Shown here: positions 3,001-27,000 of the stretch, piece by piece
Layout of the letters: every line of letters starts with the position of its first letter
Position numbering within the stretch: position 1 is the stretch's first letter
Assembly: GCA_002269645.1 (NCBI GenBank)
Contig: NIVC01001753.1
Location: forward strand, 1 to 64,000
Length of the DNA: 64,000 nucleotides
Direction of reading: 5' to 3'
Source of the DNA: Macrostomum lignano
Lineage: Eukaryota
Program-made: the position numbers and the translations under genes
Notes under the pieces: model-generated
The model's database searches: none
The model's input: only the letters and a program-made list of their open reading frames with translations
Told to the model about the DNA's origin: nothing

Positions 3001-6000
3001 AATGAATTGCGCTATAGCCTTTGAGATGATGCGAGTGGCCAGGGGCGAGCGTAGTTCTGCAGCGACGCTGTCAGGCTCTGCAGCTGCGGTTTTATTTGAG
3101 CCCCGGCCGGACCATTGTCGGGGGCCCGCAGCATTAAACATGTCTTTAACAGTGCGGGGCGGTGAGCATGGGGGGAGATGATGCTCTAGAAGATGGAGGA
3201 ACATAATAATAAAAGCCTCTCCTGAATTCTCCTCAACGGCAAGACGAGTTCCGCCGCCCGACTCAGTCCCCCCGCATAGCTCGAGCGCGTCTGGATCGCC
3301 ATAAATTGGGATCATTGCTCCGCTCCTCAATGCCTCTCTCTCGTGCGGAGCTCGTTCGCTTCACTGCCTGCCCTGCCTCCCTATATGCGCCTGCTTGTTA
3401 ACTTCGCGAAGATCTATACAGCGCGTCTCGCACCTGCTGGTATGTAGCAGACAAACTTCAGGCCGCGAGATCGGGTTTTTGTGTTTAGATTAGCTGTGGC
3501 AGGATAATAGAACCGCCCGCAGATCCTCGCGGAGGATGAGGTGGTTGTCCTATAAAAAATTTTTGGGAAGGACGAGACAAAGCGTGGAGTCTGCAGATCT
3601 AACTGCTGAATACCGAGGAGCGGCTCGCATTCTCGCGCGTTGTTAGGGAAAGAATAGGGGGGGAGGAAGTCTAAGGAATAAGAGCGTTTGAGACGCGGTG
3701 AGCAGGCGGAAGAGCTCTGGTAGGCGCATTCCCTCCCTGTACCCGCTCTGCTGCATTCTGCCTCGAATCGCAAGGGGTTGGGGGCGCTCGAGGGGGAAGT
3801 GGGAGTAGAGAAACAGATGGAGGAGGGAGCGATGGAAAAGGTGGAAGTGGGTGTAAAGAACAAAGAAACTCTATGCTGCTGCAGTTCCCACGAGCTGCTT
3901 TCGGCACAGAAGATGCGCAGAATAAGCCAGGCCTTCCTCCCTCAGCCCCGTCGTTGCGGGTCCCGCAGCGTGTGACTCCCTCCTTCCCTCCCTCCCTCCC
4001 CCCATTATCGTCGCTGCTCGCAATTCGGGAGAACTGCCTTTTAATGGCTTCCTTCTCCATCCCAAAACTGTCCCAGTATCATTCATACCTGTCGAGCAAT
4101 CGAGGTATATAACAGTCTATGTAGGCGCCGGCCAACTTCGGCAGTGTCAAGGTGGTTGCGGGAGCTGGCATTGGGATATCTTGTTCGTCGAGTCCAATTG
4201 AGTTCCCCAACTCTAATGATGAAACTTGAGCACCGCAGATCCAATTAACAATGGCCGCCCGCTCTGTGCATCCAAAAAAGCGCCTGACACACGAAGGGGC
4301 GGCTGTTGTTGACGCTGCACCCTGGACCGAAAAAAACTTGTGTGGTCTTCCCCCATCAAAAAGGGAAGATGACTCTCAAAGAGCTCCATAGGCCGGGATT
4401 ATCAATCCCTCCACAGCGTTTTTGGTTCGACAGCTTTGTGTGAGTCGGACCCGAATTTCTTGCTTGCTGTCGCGATCAAAAAAACTTGGCGCCAGAACAA
4501 TGGGCGCAGGAGCGATGCAAAAAAGTAGTCTATTTCGTTTCGCCAACTTGAGAAGCAGCCTAGTCAGCCTCTCCGCACACTCGGGAGACAGGCGGCAGGG
4601 TGGGTGACAGGGGGGGCTGCCCGAGGTGATGATATCGATTTACCCAGCCGACTCAAAAGCCGCATTTATTCCCCCCCCCCCCGATTTCCCGCAAAGCCAG
4701 CCTCGTTGGAGGTAAAAGAGGAGGAAGGCGCTCGGATCGGGGGAGAATTCCCACATTTTTTGTGTTGTTGTCATCCTGTCTCTCTGTATTCGTCATCTCC
4801 CCAACACCGCAGTTTGCAAGCTTTCAAACAAAGATTTTGAGCGCCCCAATTCCTCTTATATAGAGCAGTTCAATGAAAGCTGATCCGCTTCGATTCAAGT
4901 GCGCAATCGGCGCGCCTCTCTTTCCATTTCTTTCTATTGCTCTGCTCGCCTGCCCAGGCATGCGGAGTCGAGGCTGGTAGGCGATGATGAGTTGCCCCCC
5001 CACCTCCCCTCCAAATTTCCAATTTGGGAGCTTGAGTCTACTCGCATAGGAAGTTGCTGCTCGGGGCCGAGTTCACCGCAGCCGCCGCGGGGAAGGAAGC
5101 TGAATGAGCTTGATAGAAAGTGTTTGTTTGCAAGGTGGCAAGCAGTTTTCACTTTGTGTGTTAGTAAGCGAGAGCAGAAAGCGACTGGGGTGTGGAAGGA
5201 GAAGCAGCTGGAAATGAGGACTGAGGGACTGCATTATCGATTTGGCTTTCACCTCTTCTGTAGCAGGCAGCTGGGCCTGGCCAAGCCGAAGGGTTCGAGA
5301 CGCTGGAGGGGGTGGCCCGGGTGACGCTTGATGGGGAGGTGATGCTGTGTGGGGTGAGCACGGCAACTGCCTGAAATGGGATTAGAAATTAGTTATGGGG
5401 GGAGGGTAGAGGAATGCGACGAGTGAGAAGAGAGGGGGGGACAGGCCCGGCCCAGAAGCTTCACTCATTCGCTCGCAGCAGCAGCAGCAACACTGGTTGA
5501 GCCCCCCCGGGGGAGCTTGAGACTCGAGCGAAACAATGCACTCGCCAGGGGGACGGGGTCTATTGTATTTTGAGGCTGGGGTTGAGGTAGCTGGCGGCTC
5601 ACCGCGGGGGATGGGAGGAGCTCTGCGAAGGGTTGGCAGTGACTTGAGGCATCTGCTGCTGCCTCCGCCGCTGCTGCCACCACCGCCGCTGCTGGGGGTC
5701 GCCGGCGGCTGATTTTGCCTTCGCGCTGCTGAGGCTGACACCTGTGGGGGAGGCTGACGATGAGGGGCACGCGGCGGCGGGAACGAGCGGAAAGAAATCG
5801 ATTTCTAGAAGAGGCTCTGGCCTGATGAGAAAGAGAGAGTGGGGGGGGGGGTTAAGAGCGAGCCAGCATGGTGGTGAAAAAGCTGGCACCCTCCAGGTCC
5901 CGGCGGGATCTGGAATTCGGAGAGCTTTTTTATCCATGCCTCGCTGCTCCCCGCGGTCTTCCCTTTCCCCGGCTTGACTACCCTCCCTGCCTCTCCGCCT

Positions 6001-6266
6001 CACGGTCGGTCATCATCAATTCATCGAAACTCGCTGACTCGAATCCCATTGTTTGAGAATGGCATAAAAAATAGAACACGAGGTAGCGGGGGGGGGGCGT
6101 TCTCGTGTGGAGCGGGGGAAGGGGAGAGCGAAGGCTGAGTGGAGAACAATGAACAGCAGCAGCACAGTGAAAAAGAGAGGGGGCACAGAGCAGAGATCGA
6201 CTCCAGGTGGAGGTCTGGGCTATTTGGGAGCTCCGAGGGTGGAGGGGGGCTGCAGAGGGCGCCGGA

Positions 6267-9200
6267 ATGTCCCGCTCCCCTGGGCCTGGAGGGCCTGAAG
6301 GGGGACAGGAAGCCCTTGCGAGCGCCGCGGCTGAGCGCGCTGTCTTCTGCGTGAATGGGCCGGGGCCCGCACTGTTTGTTCAGGTAATCATTCAGCCGCC
6401 CCACTCCACCGCAACCGAGCTTCTTCTCGGGGTGGCCCTCTTCGGGTCCTGCTGCTCCGGAAATCGGCTCCGTTGGTAACAATGGGGACAGAATCCTCTT
6501 ATTGCTCAGCCTGTCACCCCGCGGGACCGAGGCGAACAATGCCGGGGGGTTGGTTTGAGGTTGAGGGGAACGGGAAAGAGGACGGTTTTCAGGTCGGGGA
6601 ATCGAGTTCCCGTCCTCCCCTCTCTCTCACATTCACTCAGCCAGATCGCTGGAGGGGCGGGGAACAATGACTTTCGAGTGTTGGCATAGGAGGGCCCGAT
6701 AATTGTGTCACAAAACGGTGGGCAGCAGGAGAACGGGAATTCCCGGTCCCTGACAGGGAGAGGCAAGTAATGGAATGAGCACACGAGCAGCTCGCTAGGC
6801 TGCGCTGGATATCAGCTGCTGCTGCAGGTCCCGCTCACACACTTCAGCGGCGCCCGCCACGCCACCCAAAGCTTCGGGTTGCTGACGACCAGCGGCGCCT
6901 CACTTGAGAGCGCCGGCTTAGCCACTCTTCGATCAGTTTGGGCAGTTTCCTACGCTAGAATAGGCGGGCCCCTGTCTGCTGGGTAGTTTTTGTTGCAATT
7001 TTTTCCCGGCTGTAATAGGGGGAGAAGGAGACAACACAGAGAGACAGAGAGACGGTGAGAGTGATTGAGCGAGTGGGCTTTAGAAGAGGAAGTCGCTTCC
7101 TGTTAGCGGCACCAACAATGGCTCCGACCGAAGTCTCCGCCGCAACCCCTCCGGCCTCTAAAAAAATTTTTTTTTTCGTTCGGCGTCATTCGCGAGTGGC
7201 GCGGTGTTTGTACAGCAGTTCCTGCTGGTACTGGCCCATTCTCTCTTCTGTCTTCTCTCTTCTGCTTTTGCGTCAGCTTTTGCATTATTCACACTGCCTG
7301 CTCAGGGGGGAGGGCATTATTATTCTTTTTTTTCGACTTCTGCTCCTAACCCACCTTACGACCCCCCGCTGTGGCACATTTGCAGCGCCTGGTGCAGAGC
7401 TTGGCGCCCAGGTGCGAGCCGCCGAAGCGCGAACGGCTACTCGAACAGTTGCTACCGGCCGCCCTGACCTCCGAGCAGGCCGCGGTGAAAGCCGCTCTAA
7501 TCGGCGGCGCCCCCGGAGTGCGTGCCTTCTCAGCCGAGGTGTGGCGCAATCATGCCGGCACCAGGCTGCTAACGCTCAGAGCGTTTGTCCCGCAAGACAG
7601 CACTCCGGCACAGCAGCAGCTACAGCAGACTCTGTCATCGTCTTCTAAATGTCGCGTTCTGGAGACCCGACCGGTGAGTGTCTTAATTGTGCTGCTTGAT
7701 TTGCTACTCAAGATACGAGAACACCCCAATGGCCCTTTACATAGCCTGTGCTTGGCGTCTTTCTTTATGTATGTGTCTTCGTCTGTCTTAGTGTCTGTGC
7801 CTTCGTCTGTCTTAGTGTCTGTGTCTTCGTCTGTCCTTAGTGTCTGTGTCTTCGTCTGTCTTAGTGTCTGTGTCTTCGTCTGTCCTTAGTGTCTGTGTCT
7901 TCGTCTGTCTTAGTGTCTGTGTCTTCCGTCTGTCTTAGTGTCTGTGTCTTCGTCTGTCTTTGTGTCTGTATCTTCATCTGTCTTAGTGTCTGTGTCTTAG
8001 GTCTGTCTTAGTGTCTGTGTCTTCGTCTGTATTTGTGTCTGTATCATCATCTGTCTTAGTGTCTGTGTCTTAGGTCTGTCTTAGTGTCTGTGTCTTCGTC
8101 TGTCTTTGTGTCTGTATCTTCATCTGTCTTTGTGTCTGTATCTTCATCTGTCTTAGTGTCTGTGTCTTTGTCTGTCTTAGTGTCTGGGTTCGTCTGTCTT
8201 AGTGTCTGTGTCTTCGTATGTCTTAGTGTCTGTGTCTTCGTCTGTCTTAGTGTCTGGGTTCGTCTGTCTTAGTGTCTGTGTCTTCGTATGTCTTAGTGTC
8301 TGTGTCTTCGTCTGTCTTAGTGTCTGTGTCTTCCGTCTGTCTTAGTGTCTGTGTCTTCATCTGTCTTAGTGTCTGTGTCTTCGTCTGTCTTAGTGTCTGT
8401 GTCTTCCGTCTGTCTTAGTGTCTGTGTCTTCGTCTGTCCTTGTGTCTGTATCTTCATCTGTCTTAGTGTCTGTGTCTTAGGTCTGTCTTAGTGTCTGTGT
8501 CTTCGTCTGTCTTTGTGTCTGTATCTTCATCTGTCTTAGTGTTTGTGTCTTAGGTCTGTCTTAGTGTCTGTGTCTTCGTCTGTCTTTGTGTCTGTATCTT
8601 CATCTGTCTTAGTGTCTGTGTCTTTGTCTGTCTTAGTGTCTGGGTTCGTCTGTCTTAGTGTCTGTGTCTTCGTATGTCTTAGTGTCTGTGTCTTCGTCTG
8701 TCTTAGTGTCTGGGTTCGTCTGTCTTAGTGTCTGTGTCTTCGTATGTCTTAGTGTCTGTGTCTTCGTCTGTCTTAGTGTCTGTGTCTTCCGTCTGTCTTA
8801 GTGTCTGTGTCTTCATCTGTCTTAGTGTCTGTGTCTTCGTCTGTCTTAGTGTCTGTGTCTTCCGTCTGTCTTAGTGTCTGTGTCTTCGTCTGTCCTTGTG
8901 TCTGTATCTTCATCTGTCTTAGTGTCTGTGTCTTAGGTCTGTCTTGGTGTCTGTGTCTTTGTCTGTCTTTGTGTCTGTGTCTTTGTCTGTCTTAGTGTCT
9001 GTGTCTTTGTCTGTCTTAGTGTCTGTGTCTTCCGTCTGTCTTAGTGTCTGTGTCTTAGGTCTGTCTTAGTGTCTGTGTCTTTGTCTGTCTTAGTGTCTGT
9101 GTCTTTGTCTGTCTTAGTGTCTGTGTCTTTGTCTGTCTTAGTGTCTGTGTCTTCGTCTGTCTTAGTGTCTGTGTCTTTGTCTGTCTTAGTGTCTGTGTCT

Positions 9201-12200
9201 TCGTCTGTCTTAGTGTCTGTGTCTTTGTCTGTCTTAGTGTCTGTGTCTTCGTCTGTCTTAGTGTCTGTGTCTTAGGTCTGTCTTAGTGTCTGTGTCTTCC
9301 GTCTGTCTTAGTGTCTGTGTCTTCGTATGTCTTAGTGTCTGTGTCTTAGGTCTGTCTTGTCGAGCCTGTCCGCTATTGTCCACCAGTCTAGGATCCACAA
9401 AGAATGTCAGATTCAGATTTGAATCCATCTATTTAACCTAGCCTGGAGAGAAATTTTCTGAACCAATCAAGACGGGAACGGCAGCCGCAAAGTCGATCTG
9501 GCATTTTGAAAAGGTGTGGGCCGAATTTTTTATGAAAAAAAGAAACTTAAAATTGATGAGTCTCCCGTCAGCTCAGTCTGAAATTGAGCTGAGCTAAGAG
9601 AGGGAAGACCGGGGAGTTTGAAGGCTCCAGGCTGACAAACGCGCGGAGGGTAAATCGCCGGGCTTTGAGAATAAAGAGGATGCTGGGAGATGAGGCTGCG
9701 GGCAAAGAGAGATCCTGAGCTCGGTGATGGAAGAAGCTTGTCGGCCTCCCTCCCAGCCGAGCCATCAAGCCAGACAGGAAAGACTTGCACGGACGTCTTT
9801 TCAAGTCGGAGAGGCTGTGACAATGAGCCCGAGTTCCGCTCCGAACAATGGAGCCCGCCACCCCCGCTATTCTCCCTCTGTCCCAGGGATGCCTATAAGG
9901 GATCTCATAATCCTCTACTCGATCTTCGCAGCGCGGGAACGCTTCTCACTGTTCAATTGGCCGGGTAAGAGGAGCTATAGGGGGCCAACTTCCTCTCCGT
10001 GTCCCCTTGTTATTCTTTGCCTTCTTCGCTGCGACCGCGAGGCCTCAAATCTGGCCTCAAGCCGACACCCCATGGCGGTTGTTAAGTCACGGCACGCTTA
10101 GCTGATGAGCTGCCGCCAGCCCGCATCTCCCGCCCACCACCTCCCTTGGCGTCGCGCCTTTTTCTGCTGCCGATTATAAGCAGCCTATTGTTGAATCTGC
10201 TTGGCCGCGGGCTCGCGATCGCCACTCTGTCGCCAGGGGAGCCTCAGCTTTGCTTTGATGAAGCATCTGCTGCAATGGCATGCTGGGGGTGGGAAGGAGG
10301 GGAGCACACGCACAATGCGAACACGAAACGGAGAATTGCGGCAAGTCGCCTTGACAACTATGGAGATGGAGAGAGGAAGCTTCATAGAAGGAAGGAAGGC
10401 CTCCTTAGCTCGCATATCGCATCGCTGGGTCCGACTTCTTTTTCGTAGCTGGTGCTGAACGAGAGGAGGAAAACAAGTCAAGCGTGCGGAGGGATTGTTG
10501 TTCTCACCTTATCTACTGATGCAATTCGTCTGCTTACGAGTATAATTGCGTGAAATCGTTATGATATGCAGTGACAGAATGTTATTGACTTGAGGATTAA
10601 AACTAGTCGAAATTAGAATTGCCAACAGACACCAAGAGGACACCAGAGGCACGCCAAGAGGACACCAGAGAAACACCAAGGGGCACCAGAGACACACCAA
10701 GAGGACACCAGAGACACACCAAGAGGACACCAGAGAAACACCAAGGGGACACCAGAGAAACACCAAGGGGCACCAGAGACACACCAAGGGTACACCAGAG
10801 AAACACCAAGGGGCACCAGAGACACACCAAGGGTACACCAGAGAAACACCAAGGGGCACCAGAGACACACCAAGAGGACACCAGAGAAACACCAAGGGGC
10901 ACCAGACACACCAAGGGGCACCAGAGAAACACCAAGGGGCACCAGACACACCAAGGGGACACCAGAGAAACACCAAGGGGACACCAGAGAAACACCAAGG
11001 GGCACCAGAGACACACCAAGAGGACACCAGAGGCACGCCAAGAGGACACCAGAGAAACACCAAGGGGCACCAGAGAAACACCAAGGGGCACCAGAGACAC
11101 ACCAAGAGGACACCAGAGACACACCAAGAGGACACCAGAGAAACACCAAGGGGCACCAGAGAAACACCAAGGGGCACCAGAGACACACCAAGAGGACACC
11201 AGAGAAACACCAAGGGGCACCAGAGACACACCAAGAGGACACCAGAGACACACCAAGAGGACACCAGAGACACACAAAGAGGACACCAGAGGCACGCCAA
11301 GAGGACACCAGAGAAACACCAAGGGGACACCAGAGAAACACCAAGGGGCACCAGAGACACACCAAGGGTACACCAGAGAAACACCAAGGGGCACCAGAGA
11401 CACACCAAGGGTACACCAGAGAAACACCAAGGGGCACCAGAGACACACCAAGAGGACACCAGAGAAACACCAAGGGGCACCAGACACACCAAGGGGCACC
11501 AGAGAAACACCAAGGGGCACCAGACACACCAAGGGGACACCAGAGAAACACCAAGGGGACACCAGAGAAACACCAAGGGGCACCAGAGACACACCAAGAG
11601 GACACCAGAGGCACGCCAAGAGGACACCAGAGAAACACCAAGGGGCACCAGAGACACACCAAGAGGACACCAGAGACACACCAAGAGGACACCAGAGAAA
11701 CACCAAGGGGACACCAGAGAAACACCAAGGGGCACCAGAGACACACCAAGGGTACACCAGAGAAACACCAAGGGGCACCAGAGACACACCAAGGGTACAC
11801 CAGAGAAACACCAAGGGGCACCAGAGACACACCAAGAGGACACCAGAGAAACACCAAGGGGCACCAGACACACCAAGGGGCACCAGAGAAACACCAAGGG
11901 GCACCAGACACACCAAGGGGACACCAGAGAAACACCAAGGGGACACCAGAGAAACACCAAGGGGCACCAGAGACACACCAAGAGGACACCAGAGGCACGC
12001 CAAGAGGACACCAGAGAAACACCAAGGGGCACCAGAGAAACACCAAGGGGCACCAGAGACACACCAAGAGGACACCAGAGACACACCAAGAGGACACCAG
12101 AGAAACACCAAGGGGCACCAGAGAAACACCAAGGGGCACCAGAGACACACCAAGAGGACACCAGAGACACACCAAGAACCCCAAAGCGACACTGGAAGGT

Positions 12201-13658
12201 GTCAAAGACACAATAAGCTCTCTAAAGTCCCCAGAATCACGCTTGCAGTACCGACTTCAAATGATGATTTATCACCCCTCTCACCACCAGCTGCCCAACC
12301 TAAACCTGCTGGCATCCACCTGCCTGGAGATCATCTCGGCTTACACCGAGTCGCAGCTGCCGCAGGACTTTCTGCCCATCGTCTGCAACCGACCGGCCGA
12401 CTTTGTCCGCCAACTGCAACAGGCCAACCAGAACGGGATGCACGACTCCATCGACAAGATCATCATTGTGCCCTGTCTGCACGCCGCCATGTCGCAGGCT
12501 GTCAGCGACGCCCTGGCTGAGACGCCGGCCTGCCAGGCGATCCTCCGCCGCTGCCGCAGCCGCCGCTGCAGTCGTCGCCGCGGTCACTATGGACGTCGTC
12601 AGATCCTTCGCGCCAATCGTCGCCTAGCGAAAGACGATGATGCCCGCCGTCCGAAGAAGGCGGACGTCAACTGTAACGACCTGCTAGATGATCAGGAGGC
12701 GCCAACCGCGACAGACGGCGAAGGCAACGACGCTGCTGTCGGCACCGTCGCCACCGACTGCGCCATGGACGCCGACGGCGACGTCGAAGCGGCTCAGGAC
12801 GTCAACGAAGAGGAGGATCAAGATCAGGAGGAAGAGGACTTCGATGACGAATCCGGCTGGGAGTCGGCGCTGGACGCCCTGCAGCGTCTCGTGGACGACA
12901 CCTCCGTGACGAAGCCGCAATCGCCGCCACCGCCGCCGTCTGGCTGCACCGATCCGGAGCTTCGCTCGGCCCGCGAGTTGGCGGCCGCCCTTGTCCGGTT
13001 CCGCGACCACCTTGGCCGGCTTTTCTCCGCCTCGTCTGGCAGCCTCGGCCAGGCTCTGCCGGTGGTGCGCGACCTGCCCGCCGTGTTGCGCCAACCGGCG
13101 ACGTCCTCGACGGCGTCGCCCTCCTCGCACGCCGACGCCGCGGTGGATCCCGCTGTGGAGGCGCTGGCTGAGGCAGCCGGGGAGCGGGTGCTGGCGGCCT
13201 ACCGCAGCCCGGACAAGGTGTGGCGTCTCGCCCAGCTGGCCGCCTTCCTGCAGCCGCGGCTGCCGCTCCCGGCCGAGACGGACCGGAAGTCGGCCGTCGC
13301 CCAGCTGGTGGAGAAGCAGCTGGCCGAAGAGGCCGGCCACATCAGCCGGCGGAAGCGGAACTCGCTGGTGGTGCAGCAGAATCTGGATCAGGCGCGCAAG
13401 TCTGTAGAAGACGAGGCCAGACGATACGAGTCGCTGCTCGAACAGGCCGGAGCTTCCGGCTCGGCGGCTCAGTGGTGGTCGTCGTCGGCCGATCGCCTGC
13501 CGACGCTGTCTGGCGAGGCGCGGCTGCTGCTGCACATCCCGGCCTGCTGCCTGCACGCTCAGTCGCCGCTCGGCTTGGCGGAATTCGCCGCTAAGCGGGC
13601 CCACCTGCCGGAGACGGAGCTGAACGCGCTGCTGGCGCTGCATCAGAGCCTGGCCTGA
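6267..13658 (+). CDS. hAT transposase-derived (ZBED-like) protein, probably domesticated and catalytically dead; exons 6267-6383 (tentative), 7386-7673, 12249-13658
   Basis: Phase-0 GT/AG junctions join the ORF pieces. Motifs parallel hAT transposases in order: RLVQSLAPRCEPPKR, AFSAEVW (TxDxW), IVCNRP (ivtDNa), PCLH (CxxH-like), SGWES (TRWNS), AAFLQPRL (LDPRFK), WWSSSADRLPTLSGEARLLLHIPA (C-terminal dimerisation domain). The first exon is the least certain part. Confidence 0.72.
7772..9358. repeat. Intronic minisatellite, ~24-bp unit GTCTGTCTTAGTGTCTGTGTCTTC
   Basis: Tandem array read directly; lies in the intron after exon 7386-7673. Confidence 0.95.
10625..12178. repeat. Intronic minisatellite, 21-22-bp unit ACACCAAGGGGCACCAGAGAA, with higher-order structure
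   Basis: Tandem array, almost T-free on the + strand; it generates spurious 530-630 aa ORFs. Confidence 0.95.
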
Positions 13659-15139
13659 GCCTGCCAATTGATGTTCACAGCAATAGAATTTTTTGTTAAA
13701 ATTAGCGAAACTTGCCGTCCCGCAACTGTTAATTGCGTTTTTCCTCATTTCCGCGTTGTCTTAAATTGCGGAATCTCTCTGGGTGCATGGCCCGTCAGCT
13801 GAGTATCTTTCTACAGTCCACCTTTTTGCACTTTATCAAAGTTTTGCGCGCACACACACACACCTTGGATACTGCTGCCTTTTTGTCTTCTGTTTGTTTT
13901 GTTTCTAATCAAATTTCTATTGCAATATTAACGGTAGTAACTATATGAATCGTGCTTATTATAATTACTAACAGCTCAAGCTTGATATTCTAGTCCTGCC
14001 AGATTTGAGATCGATTCGAGAATAAAGCAACTCCACTTGTACATTTCTAGGCAAACTGATTGCTGGTGAACTATTAATTTGAGTAGATTTTCTGTGTGTC
14101 GCACCATATTAAACTCGAGTGTTATTGTTATTTCACTTCATTAATGATTGCACATCCGCTCTGTCTTTTATTCGTTTTGCGCTTTTGGTTACTATAGCAA
14201 CCGCTCCGCGTCCGCTTTTTATCGATTCCTTCGTTTTGTGCTCAGCCTTGTTTTCTTCTCTACTTTTTCTGTTGTTTTTTTTCTACTTCTTATGTCTTTA
14301 GCCGAAAAGACAAGCAAAATAACGGAACGCAGAGCCTGTCCGTTGCTGGAGCTCACGTCGCTGCCTTCACTTGCAAATAGGGGAAAATGAAATTGTGCGC
14401 AATTGTCGCTTAGCGTTAGCCTCGTGGTACTGTTAATAACACATTCTTTATTAATATTTTGTTTAAGCACATTTTTAAGAAGCTGCACACACAAACTTTA
14501 TGTAGTCAGCAATTTCTGAGTCCCAGCTTCATCATATATCTATTTATGGTGTCAATTAGCAGCAAAGAAGCCGCGTTTTTCACCCCTGCACCCACCCACC
14601 TCATCTCCAATGTCAATTCGATCCCCTTTGTTCCCTCTCCAGTCTCCTGCATACATATTTATTTATGATTTATTAGTTTGTATATGCATAAATAAATGGA
14701 GCGTTGGCTCTACTAAAACTGTCAAAATTAAACGAAACATTAAAGTTGCAACGTTTTCTTCTTGTTTATTGTGTTCATTGATGCCGGTTTCCTATATGAG
14801 GGCTCCGGGGCACCCTGGCGCAACGCCTTAGGCACCATCGGTCCCATACATGCGCAACAGTCGGCCGATCCGGCTGACCGATTTGGCGGCCAACCAAGGT
14901 AAGTCGCAAAAATGCCCACCCCAAAGAATACAGACGTAGTACTAATTAGATGACAAGGCATTTAGCCCTAATAAGACAGTCATAGCTACTCCTACCGTTT
15001 ACCCGAAATTGCGTTAATTTTGCTTTAGGGTTTCTCTTTCACAGGTAAGTCGCATTTTTGTTAAAACTAAGTCGCACGGCCGACCGAATTTTGGAGGTTG
15101 CGCATGTATGATCGGTCCCACAACCAGCGCTGACGGCAG

Positions 15140-15300
15140 TTCTGCCCATCCCGCCGACTTCTGAGCACATGCAAGCGCGCCAATACTGTACACGCAGGCA
15201 CAGCACTCATTCATACATACGGTTCACACAGGGTGTACAGCAGCCTTTCGATTTTCTCTTCGTCAGACATGTGCACCTTCTGTGCCTTGGAGGAAGGGTG
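15140..15300. repeat. Dispersed repeat family with core CACAGGGTGTACAG(T/C)GGCCCTTTGA; other copies near 19285, 44230-44345 and inverted at 48585-48680
   Basis: Similar sequence blocks seen by eye at four locations. Confidence 0.6.
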
Positions 15301-16900
15301 GCGCTCCCGCGCGCATAGATGTGAATCAGTGGCATTGGGGCCGTGGTGCGATTCAGACACGTTTACCGCTGAACTGCTCTTCCCCTGCTGGTTTCCTAGA
15401 AAGTAAGTGAATTTCTTAGAACATTCTAATATAATAGGATATCATATTTTATAGAGGCACTGTGGCATCGAGTATGAACTCGAGTAAAAATTACACATGT
15501 AAATCCACCAAAATCAATACTTCCAAGTCGATCTGACATTGAAAAATTCGCTGGAGAAAACACCACCGCCTGCACAGTCTCCGGTGTCCAAAAAGTACTA
15601 TAGATTTGCTTGAAAGTTTTAACGGAAATTTGCATCTCACCTTTAATCAAAGACAAACCAAATTTATTTAGATTTTTTCCTAATCACAACGCAATTGATG
15701 TTTTCTTACTAACCTTAGTTGCTAAATGCAGCTAATTTCACTGTTCTTTAGATGAATGTCTGAATACTTCGCATAATGCTAAGCAGTCTGCTTCCCTTTA
15801 CAATGCATGGTACACGGAACATACACCGCTGTAATGGTACATACACGCGACAGACAGTCCACTACTGGTGTCTATGGTCAAAACACTTATCACTGCCGCC
15901 ACATTGCGGCCATAGACATGCAGCGGTTGCAAGACCAATGCGCCTGATACAACAGTAGAAATCGTGTCCTGCTCGTTTGAACAGAAGCTACAGACAGCCA
16001 GACCGGGGAAAGAAAATTTCCCTTTTTTGATTGACAGGCCACTCGAAAGCTCCGCTCCGGCCTCCGAGGCACAATTTTGAAGGGTTAGGGCGGATGAGTA
16101 AACACTTCGCGGCTTGTATAGCTCGCTTGCATCTCAGTTTGACAGCTCAAAATGCGGATATTTCTCCCAATATGGAGGCGTCGAGGGAGGGGGGGATTAT
16201 TCCTGTCCGACCGATTCATCCTCAAACTGGCAATAATTTTGAATACCCTGATTTATCATACCTTCACCAATATTACTCTCTCACCTGTGAGAATTTCACC
16301 CAGTCAAACCCGGGGCTTGGGTTTGCTTGGCTAGGTTGATGGGACAGAATCTGTAGCAGCAGTTGATAAATTTTGACAAACAACATATAGCAATTAAAAA
16401 TTCTAAACATAAAAATTTCAATTCTTTTTTTATTCACAGAGAGTAACATTTGCATTAAAAAAAGAACAAAAATGTACAAAGTATGAGTACAAGTGGCGGA
16501 GGATCGTCCTGTATATCAGCAAGAAAATACAACAAATTAAATGTTAAAAAAGCAACTCGGTAAGCTCACACATTGTTCCAGAGTCCCAAGTTTAAAGTCT
16601 CTGTCATGTCTGAACCCCGCATTTACAACACAAAAATTAGTAGCATCAGAAAAAAGTTCTAAAAAACTAAAATCGCTACTAAATTGGCGTCTGAGTAGTA
16701 ATATAAGAGTATTACGCTGAAAAAGGCTCCGAGCCAGTTTCTGAATTTATCTCATGTTTTTAACAATGTGAAGGATTGGATTAAAATTGGAGCAAAGCAG
16801 CATAGCCATGCGGCGCTGGATAAGTGTGCGACCCAAAAAGAAAGCTTAGAAAATCACCAAAGCCCAAGCTTATGGAGTGCAGGGCACGTGGCTATGGCAT

Positions 16901-17509: not shown

Positions 17510-20500
17510 TTAATTAGCCTTAGCCCGTACAACGGCCTGATTCAGTCTGGCCACGTGCGGACACAGGCCGGCCAGTTTGTCCAAGCTCAGTCCTTGAATA
17601 GCCGCTAGTGGCGCCAGTTGATCAGCGTTACGCGCCGCAGCGCACAAAGCCCGCGCCAACGTCAGCTGGGCGGCCTCCGAAGCGCCGGAGGCGGCCATCG
17701 CCTGCAAACGGTCGGTCAGGAGGCAGCCGAGGTCGAAAGCAAGGGACTCGTTGCCCTGAAATGGCGGGAGCGATATTGCGGCAGGATCGGTCGGGTTTGC
17801 AGGTTTAAAGATATTGTATTCTTGACTCTATCTATACAAGCAGCACCGCTACAGCTCTTCAGGAAATGTTACACCCTCTAATTCCTCTGGGATTAATACT
17901 AAAAGTATAACTCTTTTAGGGATTAATGCTACACCCTAACTCCTCAGGGATCAATGCTACACCCCCAATTGCTCACCGGCCGCAGCAGAAGCAAGTTAAG
18001 CGCCAATGCCCCGCCCACTTCAGGCAGTCCGGCCCGGCCACCCGAGGCCAGCAGTCGGCGGGCACAGTTGGCCAGTCGATCGGCCGAAACGCCGCCGGCA
18101 AGCAAGTCGCTGGCCGAGTTGACAGCCACCCGGCCGGCCAGTTCGGCAAAAGCGGGCTGCCGATCTGACCTGGCCAGCAGCTGTTCGAGCGTCGACACGA
18201 AGCGATCAGCGGCCGCAGGCGCAGCGAGCGGACTCGGCTGGCTGGAATCACCAGACGTCGCTGTGCGTCGGAGAAGCGACGTGAGGCGCCGACTGGAATC
18301 GGCGCAAATTTCCGCTTCGTTTAAAGCGTCGAGCCAGCAAAGCTCGGCGTCTTCGCGGCTGTCGGCGACATCGTCAGGTCCGGTGTCGTCGGCAAAGTCG
18401 GCTGGCGGATTAGCAAATTTGATGGGGCTTGGAAGCTGCGACTGCGGCTGAGTCTGCGACTGTGGCACCTGTCCGCTACCACTGCCGGGGCCTAAATAAA
18501 AAGCGGATTAATTATTAGCATGCTACTATTAGTAGGAAAAAATGATAGGCCGAGTATATTAGTAGTACCTGTACATGATGAGAGATCGCACTTTCAGAAA
18601 AAAGATGAACAGAAAAGGACCATGCTCAATACAAAGAGTGCAAATCATATTTTTTAACTTCTATAAACATAAAAATTTGTTTTTTTAACCGTGTCACTTA
18701 TTACACAGGTGAGGTCCCGAGTTTGAATCCGAGTTTTCAAGTCCGAAAATCTTTAACACACTAACCAGCTGCGCCTCCGCCACCAGCTGTAGTAGGCCCG
18801 GAATTAGCGGCAGTGGAATTCGAATAGTGATAGCCCTGGGTGTGAGTCAGCTGCATCTGCATCGAGCTGAGCATCTGTTCCAGCTGGGCGCCGAATGGCG
18901 TCGACAAGACTTCGGCAGGCAGGCCGGTGATGCGCGCCGGAATGCCTTGGCCAGTGAGAAACTGGGCCAGCTCATCGGAGAAATTGTTGCAGTTGTGTCG
19001 CAGCAAATTGTACCGGCTGCCGTGGAATCTGTCCCGACTCAGGTCAGCTAGCAGCTCATCTAGCACCTCCTTGGGCATCTCTGTGCGGCCTAGGTTGTGC
19101 ACCTCCAACGGCTCGCCAAGCACTGTACCACTCTGAATTACATTATAATGGTTAGTTAATGTAGTATAAAAGCAATCACTTATGTAATAATAATATTCTA
19201 AGTATTCTGGGCACCCTAGAGCAATGCCTTTGGCAACATCAAGAGTTCTGCAAATTCCTCTGTCTCCTTATTATATGCAGACATACACTGGGTGTACAGT
19301 GGCCCTTTGACTTCTCTAATCATCAGATATCTTCAGGCCTTTGGAGGGTGTGAGTTGCATAATTTGACGACCCCTTGGAACCACTTGTTGAACACAAGCC
19401 CTAAATTAATATAGTCCAGAATAGAATTAATTCAAAACTTGATTTGAAAATATATATAGATTTTCTCCTAGATTTTCTTTTGGAGCTTTTTATTAGTTAT
19501 TTTAGTAATTCTATCTTTATAAAAAACATCAATATTAAATACTTACAGGTAAACAAAATTGAATTCCATCACTTCCAAAGAAGTACTCGTGGCCAAAGAC
19601 AACAATTGATGTGTGCCAAATTCCATCAATTTGTTTACCTATCAAGAAGAAAGCATATAGATAACTTGCATTGTAGATAAAATTGTTTAGGTTCAATCAA
19701 CTTTTTTGTACTTAAAGACAAGTGGCATATATAGCTATTAATACATTTTAAGATTTATTATAATTATTAATTGTTAATCTTACAGATGCATAAATTTATT
19801 TTATTGTAATATACTAGCCTACTTTTAATATGTCTAAAGTTTCAAAATAGTCCATGGGCAGCAGGAGCTTGTGGCATTGGGGACATGTGCCACCCCTAGA
19901 AAATGAGTCTACGAAAAGGTAATTTTTAGTGCTTTTATAGCTTTTTCTGATTTTAGGCCCTAATTAGTAGCTTATAAAAGACCTGTGCCCCCCCTAAAAT
20001 ATTAGGCTCTGCCACCCTTGAACTTGAACTTTTAGCAGCATCTTAATCAAGTTATAACTAGCTAACAATAGTGATAGAATAGATCCTATATACTAAAAAT
20101 AAGTTGTCTTCTATGCTATATTTGATTTGCTAGCAAAAATGCTAGCATAGCTAGTATAAAATGATTGAAGTTATTTATATTTATAATATATTAGATAACA
20201 TGTTTATTATTTTATATTGTTCAGTGACTTAAATATCATTTTTTCATAGAAAGTGTCCATTTTTAGCGATTAAGTATTTTTTAAGTGAATCGAACTCACT
20301 CAGTCTCACACTGTCAAGAAACTTTTTTGTTCAATGCAATGGCCTAACAACAGCACAACCAAAATTTTCCATTGAAAAAATAGGTTTATTCATTTATTGT
20401 TATGTAAATTTGGTGCTTTTAACAAAAATGCACAAAACGATTAAAACTGAGCTGAAGACTAAGCTACAATCCCAACCCCAATCCCAATCCTAACCCCAAT

Positions 20501-20623
20501 CGGCAATCCCAATCCCAACTCCAATCTCAACTACTACATGATTAACTTACCAAGAAACATAGGCGAAAGAGACTTTGCCAAGCCTTGTGAAATATCGTAG
20601 ATGTAGAGTTTGACTTCAGTCAT
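17510..20623 (-). CDS. DESI1: Desumoylating isopeptidase 1 (PPPDE peptidase) with C-terminal helical extension; exons 20623-20551, 19638-19547, 19132-18766, 18491-17977, 17755-17510
   Basis: Spliced protein reads [49 protein letters not shown]...[21 protein letters not shown]...[11 protein letters not shown]. The His (WHTS) and Cys (HNCN) catalytic dyad is present, and all junctions are GT/AG with consistent phase. Confidence 0.92.
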
Positions 20624-21028
20624 AGCTAAAAGCAAGAATTTGTATCCGAAAAACAGTTAGTTGACTGAAAATCACAAAAAGATTTGCTATTTTACTGAGC
20701 AACGCCTAGTAAAGCTAGTTAAATAATAATAAAAAATGCACACTCATGTTTGCAGTGCAAATTTTATCGTGACAGCAAAGTATAACAAACAGGTAAGCAA
20801 TTTTTTACAATGCTAAAAGTTTTAGCACCAGTAAGTTACAAAAAATAAAAAAAAACAACTTTATTTGTCGTAATAACGTTTTCTTTTAAAACACTATTTT
20901 TTCAAAAAATCTACTTTCCTATCGGAGTTCCAAGAAAATTTAGAAAATTTAGTGTTTGTCAGGTTTATATCAAGAATACAACCAGAGACTGGGATATTTG
21001 AAAATATCTTCAGATTTGCAACAGGGAC

Positions 21029-24000
21029 ATGACTAAAAAACTATTAAGTGAGTAATTTTGATTTGCCTATTCTCTTACAACACAAACAATTTATGCATGT
21101 GTTATCCATTGCAATACAATTTGGCTATGCCTATAGGCATGTTAATCTTTCTTTAGGTTTAAGTTTAAGCATTAGTTCTTTAAGGTCATGACATTAAATG
21201 CCTTTAAGACTATATAAAATTTTAGGTAGCGGTCCAGTATAGTAACAGCCATTTTGCTAGGGGGCTAACAGCCACTTTGGTAACAAGTGAGAATAATATA
21301 ATATATATTAATTGATATGCTTTGAAAGAATGTGCAAATAAACTTTAAAGAAAGAACAACAAAACACATGCATACCTGCATGTGTTTAACTTGTTTAAAA
21401 GTGTTTTGAACAATCTATTTTAACTTCCGGATGAGTCAGATATATGCACCCAAGACATCCTGTAATTGACCAAATATTGTGTACTATGCACATTAGAATA
21501 ACTGATCTAGCTAGAGAATAGCAACTTAGAATTTAATAATCTACTTTTTTCATTCATTGTTTAATTTTTTTTCAATTTTAATATATGTGAGCTTGCTTTG
21601 CTTAATTTTTTTTGCTTTCAAATTTTTCACAAAGTAATGCAGAAGTTTAACCAAATTATAATACAGTTCAACTAGAAAGTTTAACTGTATATGGCAATAA
21701 GTCATAAGATATTTGAGATGTTAATTATTAAACGAATTATTGCTAAACCTAATTATCATAAAAATTAAGTGTTGATAGTCATAAATTTGCTTTAGTCATT
21801 TTTTTTACCAAAGTGGGCTATTACCAAAATGGCTGTTACCAAAGTAGATTGTATTCAAATTTTATATCCTTTGGTATTAGTAGACCTTGATTTGCTCACC
21901 TTATTGATAATAAATAAATGAAGCTTAAATTCATTTTTCAATATTGACAACAAAAAACAATGTTTCAACATACTAAGGCTATAATCAATAGTGTTCCGCC
22001 ATAGCCATAGCTATGGCTACAGGATCCTATGGCAAATACAGTAAAATAGGTGCCTATGGCAGCTATGGATATGCCTATGGTAGCTAGCTGCTCTTATGGC
22101 TACAAATACAAGAATATGGTAGTTGTTGTCACATTCCATAGATTCCTATAGCCGTAGTTATTAATGTTAAAAAAATAGAAAAAAATGTACCGTCACAGAA
22201 AAATTTCTGATTGAACAGTGCAAGTTCGAACAAAATCGGTTGAGCCGTTTTTGCTAAAATCGATCAAACACACACACATATACCGACAGACCATTTTTAG
22301 TATATGGACATTAAAAACAAGTAGAATAAAACAAATATTACTTTTAGTAAACTGTATTATCAACTTAGAAACTCTTAAAATATACTTAATAAAGTACAAT
22401 TAAACACTAGCAAACTCTAATTTTTATTAATGTGAAAAAGTTCAAAATTAGTACTTTCAGCAACTATTAAGTATTGTTGCTCTGAAAAAAGAGGAAATAT
22501 TATCTTACAAAGGCAATCAAGTGTTTCTTTTAATTTCTAATTTAATTTGCAGTTGTTTAAGCACTAGGTTATCTTCTTGAATAAAATATTTTGTTTTCTA
22601 AACTTTTTGTTAAAACTATGACTATAGCTATGGAAACTATGGGAATATAGTAATATTGGGGTCCCTATAGCTACAGAATATGGAGAATTGGAATAAGCCA
22701 TAGTTTTGCTTATGGCTACAGCCATGGTACATGGACCCTCTATGGCAGAACACTAATAATCAGGGTATAATTTGTTAATGAAACACAAAAAATCTAAATC
22801 TATGAATGATTGTATATTCTAATGCATCAAATAAAAAGGGAATAGTGAATATAAAAAAGGATAAAAAACTAGACTAGAGATAAAGGTAAGTAAGAAAGAG
22901 AGAAAAAGAGAGCACTAAGGAAGGAAATATGAATTATATACACAAAATCTAGTCAACCTCAAAACACTCTAATAAGGTGACTTATATCACTATGCAATGC
23001 CAATAGCTAAACATTGAAGCTAGGCCATACTCCGGATCATGTTGGCCATAGTCCAGATCATGGTCTAGGCATATGCCAGAATGAAAATTCTTGTTTTTTT
23101 AATTTTATGCCCATGTAAAATTTAAATTTTTTACACCAAGCTTAGAGTTTTTTATAGGCCAATATTTTTAGAGAATACAATATTAGAAATAAAAGAGTTA
23201 TACTAAACTCTAATAGCATGGTTGTTTTTTGCTAAAAACTGATATTCTTTGTTTAAATTTAGTTTTTCTTATAAATTGCATTAATATTTTTTATTTTAGT
23301 TTCCAATTATTTTGAAAAGAGCTTTTGTTGGTTGATATTTAACTATACAATTATATTAGCCTTAAAGTCAGATATTTTTTGTATGCCGACTATGTACACT
23401 TCATATTGTACCTAAAAATTCTATATGCCAAGTGTATACCAAGATTGTGCAAAAGCAAGAATATGCCAGAATTTTCTAACATAAAGGCTACCTTCAGGAC
23501 TATGGCATGTTGGATGCATGCTGGAATGTATACTAGGGAGTTTTTTGTTTGCATGCCTACTGCACACTATGCTTGCTGACTATATGCCATGTATGCCATT
23601 GATATTAATTAACAATAGGCCTACAAAAATCAGTTTGATAAGCATTTTCAAACATTACATTAAAAAATGTATAAGAAAAAACAATGCTTTAAAAATTATA
23701 ACCATAGGCATAAGCATTAAATTATGTTACAAATACTAGTAAATCTTTTCTAGTAAAAAATAAAAAAATAAAATAGATTTATGAATATTTTTGAAATCTT
23801 AAGAAGACTGCCCTACTACAATCATACCATACCACATTCTATACTATCAAGGCCAAGCTATTCCATAGCATAGCATACCACTATGCCACATATATAAATG
23901 TATGCCAATGCATGCCAATTTTTTGGCTAAACCAAATGCATGTTGGAATTTTCTGGCATGATGTATGCCTTCTGGAGTATGGAAGCAAGGGTTTTGAGCC

Positions 24001-27000
24001 TTAATATGCAATGTTCTTAGAATCCCAAACAGTCAATACTTTTAGAAGGTTCACTTTGTTCTCTATTACAGCATCATAATATAGATATCATCTTAAAGGT
24101 AAAACCATTCATTTTTTCCATAAGTTTTCTGGTATAAAGGACATTTAGACTATGGCATTGGCTTATAGTTTTTTTAAAACCTTTGTTTTCTAGCATGTAG
24201 TTGATATCTTCAAGATTATAATATACTCTTCATATTTTTATTATTTTATATATTATATTAAAACAAAAAATCAAAGCTTTAACCAATTGTATAACATTGT
24301 ATTATATAAGCATAATGATTTTTAGAAACACTTTGCTTAAATGCATGTGCGTGTGTCAATTCAATTATTGGCCTAGCTGACTGGGCCTGTGTCAATGATA
24401 TCCTGAATCATGTTTAAATATAGAATAATTGCTAATCAATCTTTGCCATTCTGATTAATATATATATATAAAAGTATGCACTAAAGGTTAAGCCTTTATT
24501 TAAGGCAATCATTTAGTATATGCCAAAAATGCTATATTAGTATATTCTGAAATGTAAAAGAAGTCTAATAGATAAGATAGGGAAAGGTCCAATAGATAGA
24601 TCTATAGGTTAAAAAGGGCATTTATGACACTAATATTGGTTTTTTCATTTTAACTTAGCCTATAAACAACCAATCTCAGCTATCCTATAGCATATATAGT
24701 GTTAGCCAGAGCTGGGTTTTAACTGCAGACATGCTCTCTTTTTATAATCAAAGCCTATAAGTAATCTATCTTGAAGTCCATGGCATTGAAATACAAGGGG
24801 TGTCCCAGAAGCCGATGACAGAAGTGTGCAGCGCACCCAGTGGTGACTATGTGGAGAAGCCTCGGGACAATGTTGATTAACTTTTAACTGTTCTTTCCTC
24901 AGCTTTCATGTTGCGGATGTTTTGTTGATTCATTGAATGTTTCGTTGTTTCATGCATCAGGTACAAAGCTTTGGTCTATGGCAATTTGTAAAAGTAGCAC
25001 AGGGGGTGGGGCAGGAAAGTGCTCATATCTCAAGAATACCAGCAGATACAGAAATAAACAGAAAGTCATTTTAATGGGCAGATAATTCTCTTTTCAACTG
25101 CAACAGACTTAATATTTCTGATTGGTCAGAAAAGGCTGTAGTGAAGAAAGTGCACCGACTTTTGGGATACCCCTCATAAATCATTTGGATAAGATAGATT
25201 GCTCATATAAAATAATATTGGTAGGCTCTTTACTATGCTATGTTTATAGCACATGATTGCGTAGGACCTTGTTGCATATAAAATTTTCCCTAGAAATAGT
25301 ATCTTCAAAAGTATGGCAATATTAGAAAAAGGCATATGCATAAATAATGCCTTTATATGTACAACTGATCAAAACAATTGATAGGCAAAAATTTAGCCTC
25401 ATGGCAAAAACTAATTGAGTTCATGTAGTATTTTTAAATGTTTAATTGTTTTTGTTCTGTTTTGCTTCAAATTCATTTTAAAATATTTTTATCTACTTAA
25501 CTAAAATACCATTTAAAAAATATGAATATAATCTTGGCTTAGATATCCTGGCTTAAATAAAAAAACTAGCCAAAATGTAAAAAAAGTTATAATTTTTTGT
25601 TATTCTGTTTATTTTTTTAGCATTGAAACTTTTTTGTAAACTGTTTAAATTTTACAATACTAAATTCATTCAAACAATGTATTCCAATCCTACCATCATG
25701 GTTCTAGCATCAAATAAAAATCATGCAAACAATCATATTGATGCCCTTTGATATTAATAAACCTGTAAAATTATTACTAACTTGTAGAGAGTCGCAGCAA
25801 GCGTACTTCATGCCGGCAAAAGTACAAGGTGCAGAAGAAGGTAAGGGAACACCTGCGCAAGGTGAAGAAAGAGGCCAAGAAGAATCCTAAACGAAAAAGT
25901 AAGTATTGTTGGCAGCTCTTTTAAACTACGAGGGCTGTCCCTAAAGAGAAGTGTCAAAAAACAATTTAGCAGAGTAGCATAAGTACTTTTGATTGAATGC
26001 ACACAAACTTCTTTGTTAGGCCACTGAGACAAAGAGATATGTATGAAAAAGCTTGAAGAAACAAAAAACTTTTTAAGCAGCAGAATATTTCACATTGCCG
26101 ACTGGTGGAGCCAACTGTGAAGAAGACTTCAAATTTACCATAGACGAAACGATCAGTTCGCGTGCGTGATGTTATTTGGATCATCACAACGAGATACTCG
26201 TAAATAAATAATCAACAGTAACACTACTTTTGGGATAGTCCTTGTATCTTGCGCATTAATTTTGGCTTTTGTGAGCGTCACCACCCAGACACACAGTGTG
26301 TACACTGCGCCTGACGAAGTAATTAAATAATGTGCAATAAAATCCATGCAAGATCGGCTAAACCTCGCACCTGTCCGCAGAGAAAGACCCGGGCGTGCCA
26401 AATTCGTTGCCATTCAAAGCCGAGGTGCTTCAACAAGCCGAAGCGATGCGCGCCGCCCATCAAGCCGAAAAGCGGGCGGCCGCCGATCTTCAGCGCCTGG
26501 TGGCCAGCGCCCAGCAGCGCCAGCGTCAGCACGAGCGCCAGGTAGGCGCCGCTAAAGCGGCCGCCGCGGCAAACGGACCGCCCGCAGAACACGTGGAACG
26601 ATCAGCTAAAGCTTTTCATCGGGAGTTTAATAAGGTGCGCTTGGCTTGTTAAATCCCCGAGGAGGTTTTAATTATTTTTCAGAAGTGTTTATCCTATGCC
26701 TAAATCTATGTTGATAGTATCGCAAGACTGATCTCTTAATCCCATTTCTGATGATATAATCCCATATATGGTCCCCTTTTCTATTTCGGGATTCTCTCAC
26801 CCCACCCTAACTCTCCAGGTTATCACATCGGCGGATGTTCTCCTCGAGGTTCTGGACGCTCGCGATCCCCTCGGCAGCCGATGCCGCGAACTTGAAGAGG
26901 CTGTACTCAGCCGGCCTGACAAGCGGCTAGTACTGGTGCTCAACAAAGCCGATCTGGTGCCCGCGAGGTGCTCAGACGTTGGGTGGCTCATCTGCGCAAG

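Follow-up and report, generated by a model that had tools for sequence, protein, structure and literature searches.

What is the gene at 6267-13658 on the plus strand of positions 1-64,000 of contig NIVC01001753.1 (Macrostomum lignano assembly GCA_002269645.1; this 64,000-nt stretch as a whole is called the window below): an active hAT transposase, the remains of one, or a gene that the flatworm has taken into its own service? The reading that we favour, at a probability of roughly 0.7, is a host gene of M. lignano that descends from a hAT transposase and is no longer able to cut DNA. An earlier interpretation made from the letters alone (the sequence-only reading) had described an uninterrupted spliced open reading frame (ORF) of about 600 residues in a possibly undescribed gene. 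The gene is annotated only as a hypothetical protein, and three exons, bounded by canonical GT/AG sites, splice into a 1773-nt open frame that encodes 590 amino acids and a stop codon. The parts of the gene model are as follows:

6267..6383, plus strand: putative exon 1, residues 1-39, with ATG at 6267 and a GT donor at 6384, in phase with exon 2.
7386..7673, plus strand: exon 2, residues 40-135, with an AG acceptor and a GT donor.
7674..12290, plus strand: intron 2, 4.6 kb, whose splice is confirmed by the public model P0001.
12291..13658, plus strand: exon 3, residues 136-590 plus the stop codon.

The public model (PAA64400.1, P0001; "hypothetical protein BOX15_Mlig000368g3, partial") is 100% identical to our translation from 7410 to the stop codon; it is incomplete at the 5' end and confirms the exon 2/exon 3 junction. 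Gene models of the M. lignano assembly stem from a genome-guided transcriptome (PMC5730564), which implies that the gene is transcribed. Exon 2 is predicted to encode the pre-catalytic helices and strands 1-3 of an RNase H-like core.

The closest reference enzyme is Hermes of Musca domestica (PDB 2BW3, 4D1Q, 8EDG). To obtain Hermes residues 220-335, PDB was probed with a hAT consensus written by hand, which served as bait and did not enter the comparison itself; in the recovered sequence D248, C265, H268 and R318-W319 fall at their literature positions (PMC6027215). Five Hermes blocks were slid without gaps along the whole 590-residue protein, with block borders set after the alignments had been inspected. 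The best placements (q, residue of the flatworm protein) are listed below:

Hermes 176-182, containing D180: best at q86, score 13, next best 11.
12372..12416, plus strand: block LPIVCNRPADFVRQL, matching Hermes 243-257 (IKFVTDRGANVVKSL), with Asn168 at D248; best at q163, score 22, next best 14, 22 being reached by 10 of 500 shuffles.
12462..12533, plus strand: block IIVPCLHAAMSQAVSDALAETPAC, matching Hermes 261-284, with Cys197 at C265 and Ala200 at H268; best at q193, score 28, next best 6, 28 being reached by 2 of 500 shuffles.
12846..12899, plus strand: block DESGWESALDALQRLVDD, matching Hermes 315-332, with Gly324-Trp325 at R318-W319; best at q321, score 21, next best 10.
13470..13655, plus strand: hAT C-terminal dimerisation-type region, residues 529-590, with Gln559 at Hermes E572; Hermes 542-579 best at q529, score 58, next best 15.

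The best gapless placements of all five blocks are collinear and in Hermes order, an arrangement found in 0.7% of shuffles. Their summed score is 142, and the maximum in 20,000 shuffles is 109 (0/20,000); the four core blocks (q86, q163, q193 and q321) sum to 84, which is equalled in 9 of 20,000 shuffles. A direct local alignment of the C-terminus with Hermes 542-579 gives 13 identities in 38 positions and a score of 60 (z = 8; 0/5000 shuffles), and the local alignment score of the Trp block is equalled by 62 of 5000 shuffles.

Word-indexed searches with the protein alone or with a three-sequence profile return M. lignano copies only. An exhaustive phmmer search of 1.84 billion representative proteins gives just two matches: P0002, a fragment of an M. 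lignano paralog with 91% identity, and P0003, a 609-residue protein with an E value of 1.1e-4 for the whole library, to which the query is aligned at both ends in the same order. P0003 carries the Pfam domain Dimer_Tnp_hAT (PF05699), its C-terminus matches the Hermes transposase, and near its N-terminus a CxxC...H...H stretch can be aligned with the BED finger of Hermes. The profile built from P0003 and its relatives P0007 and P0008 (A5) matches Hermes at an E value of 1.7e-5, with a weak second stretch, also collinear, that places slsvEvwr of A5 on SATID180LW of Hermes. On the flatworm protein, A5 scores 31.6 bits, and 6000 shuffles, global or within local windows, reach 8.4 at most; the match covers residues 39-115 and aligns FSAEVWR to the slsvEvwr column. 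At the other end, A5 aligns the C-terminus through Ala558 with the residues just before Hermes E572. In the central region the profile is marginal at best on residues 136-232 (4 of 500 shuffles equal the score, and the alignment is not collinear) and scores inside the shuffle range on residues 300-480, and the P0003 family is therefore unable to bridge the second Asp, CxxH and Trp positions. Taken together, the exhaustive-search link to P0003, the profile bridging to Hermes and the block-wise Hermes comparison support descent from the hAT transposase superfamily, the ancestry proposed in the sequence-only reading.

The Hermes alignments agree with the earlier claim that the catalytic triad has changed from D/D/E to E/N/Q, at codons 7536, 12387 and 13560. 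D180 is replaced by E90 (codon GAG, 7536..7538, plus strand, in FSAEVW), D248 by N168 (AAC, 12387-12389, in IVCNRP) and E572 by Q559 (CAG, 13560-13562, in HAQSP). C265 and W319 are kept as C197 and W325; H268 is replaced by A200, and R318 by G324, with loss of the Arg of the RW pair. The CxxH motif had been thought shortened to CLH. CLH is present (residues 197-199) and the motif is lost, but a deletion need not be assumed: Ala200 occupies the His position, with His199 one residue early, and an ETP motif 15-17 residues past the Cys is in register in Hermes and in the query, which indicates that the His was displaced or lost without a deletion. Five Hermes active-site residues are listed as essential (PMC6027215), and with the CxxH His added to them, four of the six examined are lost. 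E90, N168 and the Cys block are kept in the 9%-diverged paralog P0002, and P0004 has the FSAEVW, IVCNRP and HAQSP motifs without change. In DDE (Asp-Asp-Glu) enzymes, metal-dependent catalysis is abolished by an Asp-to-Asn or a Glu-to-Gln change, and we infer that the protein would be unable to cut DNA.

We give hardly any credence to a still-active, unconventional transposase that uses the Glu and other nearby acidic residues. In its favour, metal binding is possible with a Glu at the first position, and N168 has several Asp and Glu residues nearby; against this, the Asn, the Gln and the lost H268 and R318 remove four of the six Hermes active-site residues (PMC6027215), the gene has no terminal inverted repeats (TIRs), and its copies lie in conserved synteny.

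Between the Cys block and the Trp helix lies the insertion that the sequence-only reading had described as basic and acidic and as preceding the conserved Trp. It spans residues 221-322, the Trp being residue 325 (SGWES, residues 323-327), and reads as follows:

Residues 221-232: basic run RRCRSRRCSRRR, read from the sequence.
12546..12623, plus strand: longer basic run RRCRSRRCSRRRGHYGRRQILRANRR, residues 221-246, read from the sequence.
12627..12851, plus strand: acidic low-complexity insert, residues 248-322, preceding the Trp motif, read from the sequence.

Two stretches are thus longer than in Hermes: the flatworm protein has about 100 more residues (basic, then acidic) ahead of the Trp helix, and about 12 more separate its D248 block from its Cys block. 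The protein shares with Hermes the strand-1, D248, Cys plus ETP, Trp-helix and C-terminal WW...P.LS...LL.IPA blocks in the same order. The two also differ in that the flatworm gene has introns, a fixed position, no TIRs and no BED finger that we could see.

The context of the gene points to a host gene. The lack of TIRs and the host-like, GC-rich codons had both been noticed from the letters, and both are reproduced here: no inverted repeat brackets 6267-13658 within 4000-16000, and the G+C content at third codon positions (GC3) is 0.64-0.82 in the gene versus 0.67 in the largest ORF within the span of a neighbouring host gene. No other hAT-like copy is found within the window. The related public records total five, namely two annotated loci (g3, the gene studied here, and g4) and three UniRef fragments. 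On contig NIVC01002877.1, g4 has the same downstream neighbour, a 430-residue Peptidase_C97 gene on the opposite strand, and it can be aligned with the window along all of its introns and flanks, well past the gene. The M. lignano assembly holds 180 Mb in non-repetitive duplicated blocks of at least 95% identity (PMC5730564), and the g3/g4 pair is best read as a segmental duplication. Copy number had been put forward as a check: a second copy exists, the gene is low-copy, and both copies share the Peptidase_C97 neighbourhood.

The g3 and g4 coding sequences differ by 17 synonymous and 13 non-synonymous changes, and the ratio of non-synonymous to synonymous rates (dN/dS) is 0.27, a measure taken from 30 substitutions between two near-identical copies in one genome. 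Nine of the 13 amino-acid differences fall in the acidic insert. The coding indels are 6 and 3 nt long, both in frame, and the non-coding indels are of mixed length. Divergence is uneven, about 0.4% over 5465-7673 (upstream sequence, exon 1, intron 1 and exon 2) and 2.2% in exon 3, a pattern suggestive of gene conversion or of duplicated blocks with a mosaic history. Because it lacks TIRs and has a syntenic second copy, in-frame indels and a dN/dS of 0.27, the locus fits an immobile, constrained, host-like gene, with support that is thin.

These data also bear on a second explanation, namely that the locus is a fossil. On this view an ancient hAT insertion shed its ends and catalytic residues, and its frame is still open and transcribed by chance, with no host function. 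We consider this unlikely. The protein is found in M. lignano only among the 1.84 billion representatives, its sequence is very diverged with no Pfam domain on record, most of the amino-acid changes fall in the long low-complexity insert, and the selection test is thin, all of which would suit a fossil. A fossil would not readily account for a 590-codon frame that stays open over two introns in two copies or more, with indels in frame, for a dN/dS of 0.27 with 17 of 30 substitutions synonymous, for core motifs that are unchanged in a third, 9%-diverged paralog, or for proper splice sites and a 4.6-kb intron 2 that is confirmed by a transcript-based model.

A third explanation accepts domestication and gives the protein a particular role, that of a repressor: it would poison the genome's own active hAT transposases through mixed oligomers or through competition for transposon ends. 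Truncated or dead transposases are established repressors of other elements (the KP form of the P element, and Ac), and the flatworm protein has kept a dimerisation-type C-terminus and lost catalysis. We nevertheless regard this role as very unlikely, since the searches detected no intact hAT transposase related to the protein (identity to its nearest relative is about 30%), no hAT-like copy lies elsewhere in the 64-kb window, and a BED finger for the recognition of transposon ends was not found in the 6.2 kb upstream.

The host-gene reading would account for the locus in the following way. The order of the hAT core is kept, with a three-strand start of the RNase H-like fold, the D248 block, the Cys block, the Trp helix, which would belong to the inserted helical domain, and the C-terminal dimerisation-type region. 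With Glu, Asn and Gln as the metal-binding triad and with the CxxH His and the RW Arg gone, the protein would act as a non-enzymatic nuclear factor. It may pair with itself through the hAT C-terminal region, and the rest of the core, together with the lineage-specific insert (basic, then acidic), may contact nucleic acid or chromatin partners; in the insert, the basic run could serve in nuclear localisation or as a nucleic-acid contact and the acidic run as a partner-binding region. The gene itself would be immobile and would spread only through segmental or chromosomal duplication of the host genome.

A number of observations weigh against this reading. The block borders were chosen after alignment, which makes the block p-values somewhat optimistic, and the Hermes 176-182 block with D180 is not significant alone. 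Near the second Asp, MAFFT offered a differing register with E155 at that position; we rejected it because the D248 block fits best at N168 by a clear margin. A phmmer search of the protein against all PDB sequences gives no match even at E <= 10. No Pfam domain is on record for the protein, and its C-terminal match thus lies below Pfam detection. When the M. lignano copies are compared with the P0003 family by hhalign, 71 columns are aligned at a probability of 33%. No search returned another Macrostomum sequence or an orthologue from a different species; M. cliftonense and M. hystrix are two congeners with genomes available (PMC10468722). An upstream BED finger exon, which the sequence-only reading had suggested looking for, is not seen, as no coding-quality CxxC...H...H stretch occurs on the plus strand in the 6.2 kb up to the contig start. 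The selection measure has the small base given above, and the putative exon 1 lies outside the cover of the public model, which starts inside exon 2. AlphaFold2 models made from a five-sequence alignment are of low confidence, with a mean predicted local distance difference test (pLDDT) score of 36.4 for the full-length protein and 40.5 for residues 22-247. Both contain three consecutive strands (residues 86-93, 99-108 and 126-135), which would suit the start of an RNase H-like fold and at such confidence are no evidence for it; the acidic insert (residues 248-322) has no regular secondary structure in the low-confidence model. A Foldseek search of PDB with the full-length low-confidence model gives no match at E <= 0.001, and the list it returns is noise.

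Some of these results would also be expected if the protein were not derived from hAT at all and the motif matches were chance events in a protein rich in Ala, Arg and Leu. The phmmer search of PDB is empty, as is a scan with the bacterial and archaeal NCBIfam library, no Pfam domain is on record, the hhalign probability is 33%, and the central region is unlike the P0003 family. Chance is highly improbable as the explanation, given a profile score of 31.6 bits versus at most 8.4 in 6000 shuffles that include shuffles of local composition, a C-terminal Hermes alignment with z = 8, and five collinear best placements (0.7% of shuffles) with a summed score unmatched by any shuffle.

The only outside relatives found by sequence are P0003, P0007 and P0008, whose sources are the Logan runs SRR23274244 and SRR23272321 and the Joint Genome Institute (JGI) metagenomes 3300081571 and 3300080920. 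The loci of this family are:

L003, 10001-11584
L004, 9621-11204
L005, 6216-7985
L002, 1424-3253

A scan of JGI metagenome contigs with the P0003-family profile gives 341 pattern matches, none of which was confirmed, and the literature searched yields nothing on the sequencing runs in which the relatives occur. Identity to the flatworm protein is about 30% and is confined to the N- and C-terminal ends. The three genes are intron-less and lie in compact, gene-dense contigs; the eukaryote that they come from is GC-rich and intron-poor. P0007 and P0008 share 70% identity, each has a GT2 glycosyltransferase gene upstream of it, and the two resemble orthologous host genes of a microbial eukaryote. 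Their triads, together with that of P0003, are decayed, with D, E and E at position 180 and R, E and P at position 572, and the family is apparently a separate case of an exapted hAT gene, so far without a name. Its central blocks are no longer Hermes-like, whereas those of the flatworm protein are, and because of this difference the flatworm gene is best kept out of the P0003 family. The Glu at the first-Asp position is common to the flatworm protein and two of the three outside relatives, and it may reflect shared descent or coincidence. It is quite unlikely that the flatworm gene and the three relatives form one old, undescribed clade of dead hAT-derived host proteins, or that the flatworm copy came by horizontal transfer out of such a lineage; the shared Asp-to-Glu change on strand 1 would be the mark of such a clade. 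If either were true, the near-isosteric Glu/Asn/Gln pocket would have been retained for work other than cutting, for example to hold a DNA end or a particular DNA structure.

Returning to the gene model, exon 1 draws support from two observations: residues 6-39 are included in the phmmer/BLASTP alignment to P0003, and the sole indel within exon 1 versus the second gene copy is 6 nt long and in frame. The 35-nt spliced leader of M. lignano has an ATG at its end (PMC8629364), and exon 2 opens in phase 0 at its AG acceptor (7385/7386). A leader-supplied in-frame AUG at 7386 is therefore possible, and trans-splicing there would yield Met followed by RLVQSLAP, a possible alternative start to the predicted exon 1. 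The M. lignano records in UniRef (P0002, P0005 and P0006) are fragments of the same protein and carry the names "RWD domain-containing", "DEAD_2 domain-containing" and "Rho-GAP domain-containing", none of which fits the sequence; these odd names are probably artefacts of merged or polycistronic models in an older annotation.

Intron 2 contains two tandem arrays:

7756..9358, plus strand: minisatellite A, 24-nt unit, about 66 copies, T/G-rich.
10629..12176, plus strand: minisatellite B, 21-22-nt unit, about 72 copies, A/C-rich, with no T.

The two arrays have opposite strand bias, and their consensus units are weakly alike in reverse complement. They are separated by a 1.27-kb unique stretch, whose length is equal in the second gene copy; that copy has the same two arrays at the same place (L006, 6515-7579 and 8851-9501), much shortened to about 43 and 30 units. 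The layout of the arrays recalls foldback-type inverted arrays. Elsewhere in the window, a 783-residue ORF at 55786-58137 on the minus strand matches Ty3/gypsy-type reverse transcriptase, RNase H and integrase (E value of 2.5e-69 to the Ty3 Gag-Pol structure), and more minus-strand ORFs follow up to about 61010; it is a long terminal repeat (LTR) retrotransposon, unrelated to the hAT-derived gene. A 6-kb block at 20001-26000 has about 30% G+C, compared to a window mean of 47.5%, and further low-GC blocks lie near 40-42 kb and 50-52 kb. An Rfam scan of the window gives no match.

Host genes of this origin are known in other lineages. The vertebrate ZBEDs (ZBED1-6 and ZBEDX) carry BED fingers, and their DDE triad is reported to be intact; C7ORF29 is a hAT-derived host gene that persists without a BED finger (PMC3606216). 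All of these are immobile, hAT-derived host genes with a hAT dimerisation region (PMC3606216), as the flatworm gene would be. The more specific proposal of a ZBED-like protein is not upheld, as no BED finger was detected in the flatworm gene and its triad is gone, unlike that of the vertebrate ZBEDs (PMC3606216). Homology searches of the protein also reveal no sequence link to the ZBEDs. In Arabidopsis, DAYSLEEPER is an essential hAT-derived gene with a BED-type finger and without TIRs or the residues needed for transposition. The flatworm protein resembles it in being a hAT-derived host protein that lacks transposition residues and TIRs, a likeness by description to a protein of the plant lineage. 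Genes derived from hAT transposases, such as the ZBEDs, DREF and DAYSLEEPER, are a recurrent source of regulators. The flatworm gene is an undescribed, lineage-restricted and probably domesticated hAT gene of this well-known kind and not a new kind, and no flatworm gene derived from a hAT transposase was found described in the literature searched.

The practical gain is small: a "hypothetical protein" receives a name, and a diverged hAT relative, missed by the standard domain libraries used in this analysis, is flagged. The wider interest lies in the active site, in which each triad residue has given way to its nearest match in size and shape (Asp to Glu, Asp to Asn and Glu to Gln) and the residues equivalent to Cys265 and Trp319 are kept. 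The flatworm protein would thus be a natural case of a preserved pocket without its chemistry, and because M. lignano is a model organism with RNA interference and transgenesis, its function is directly testable.

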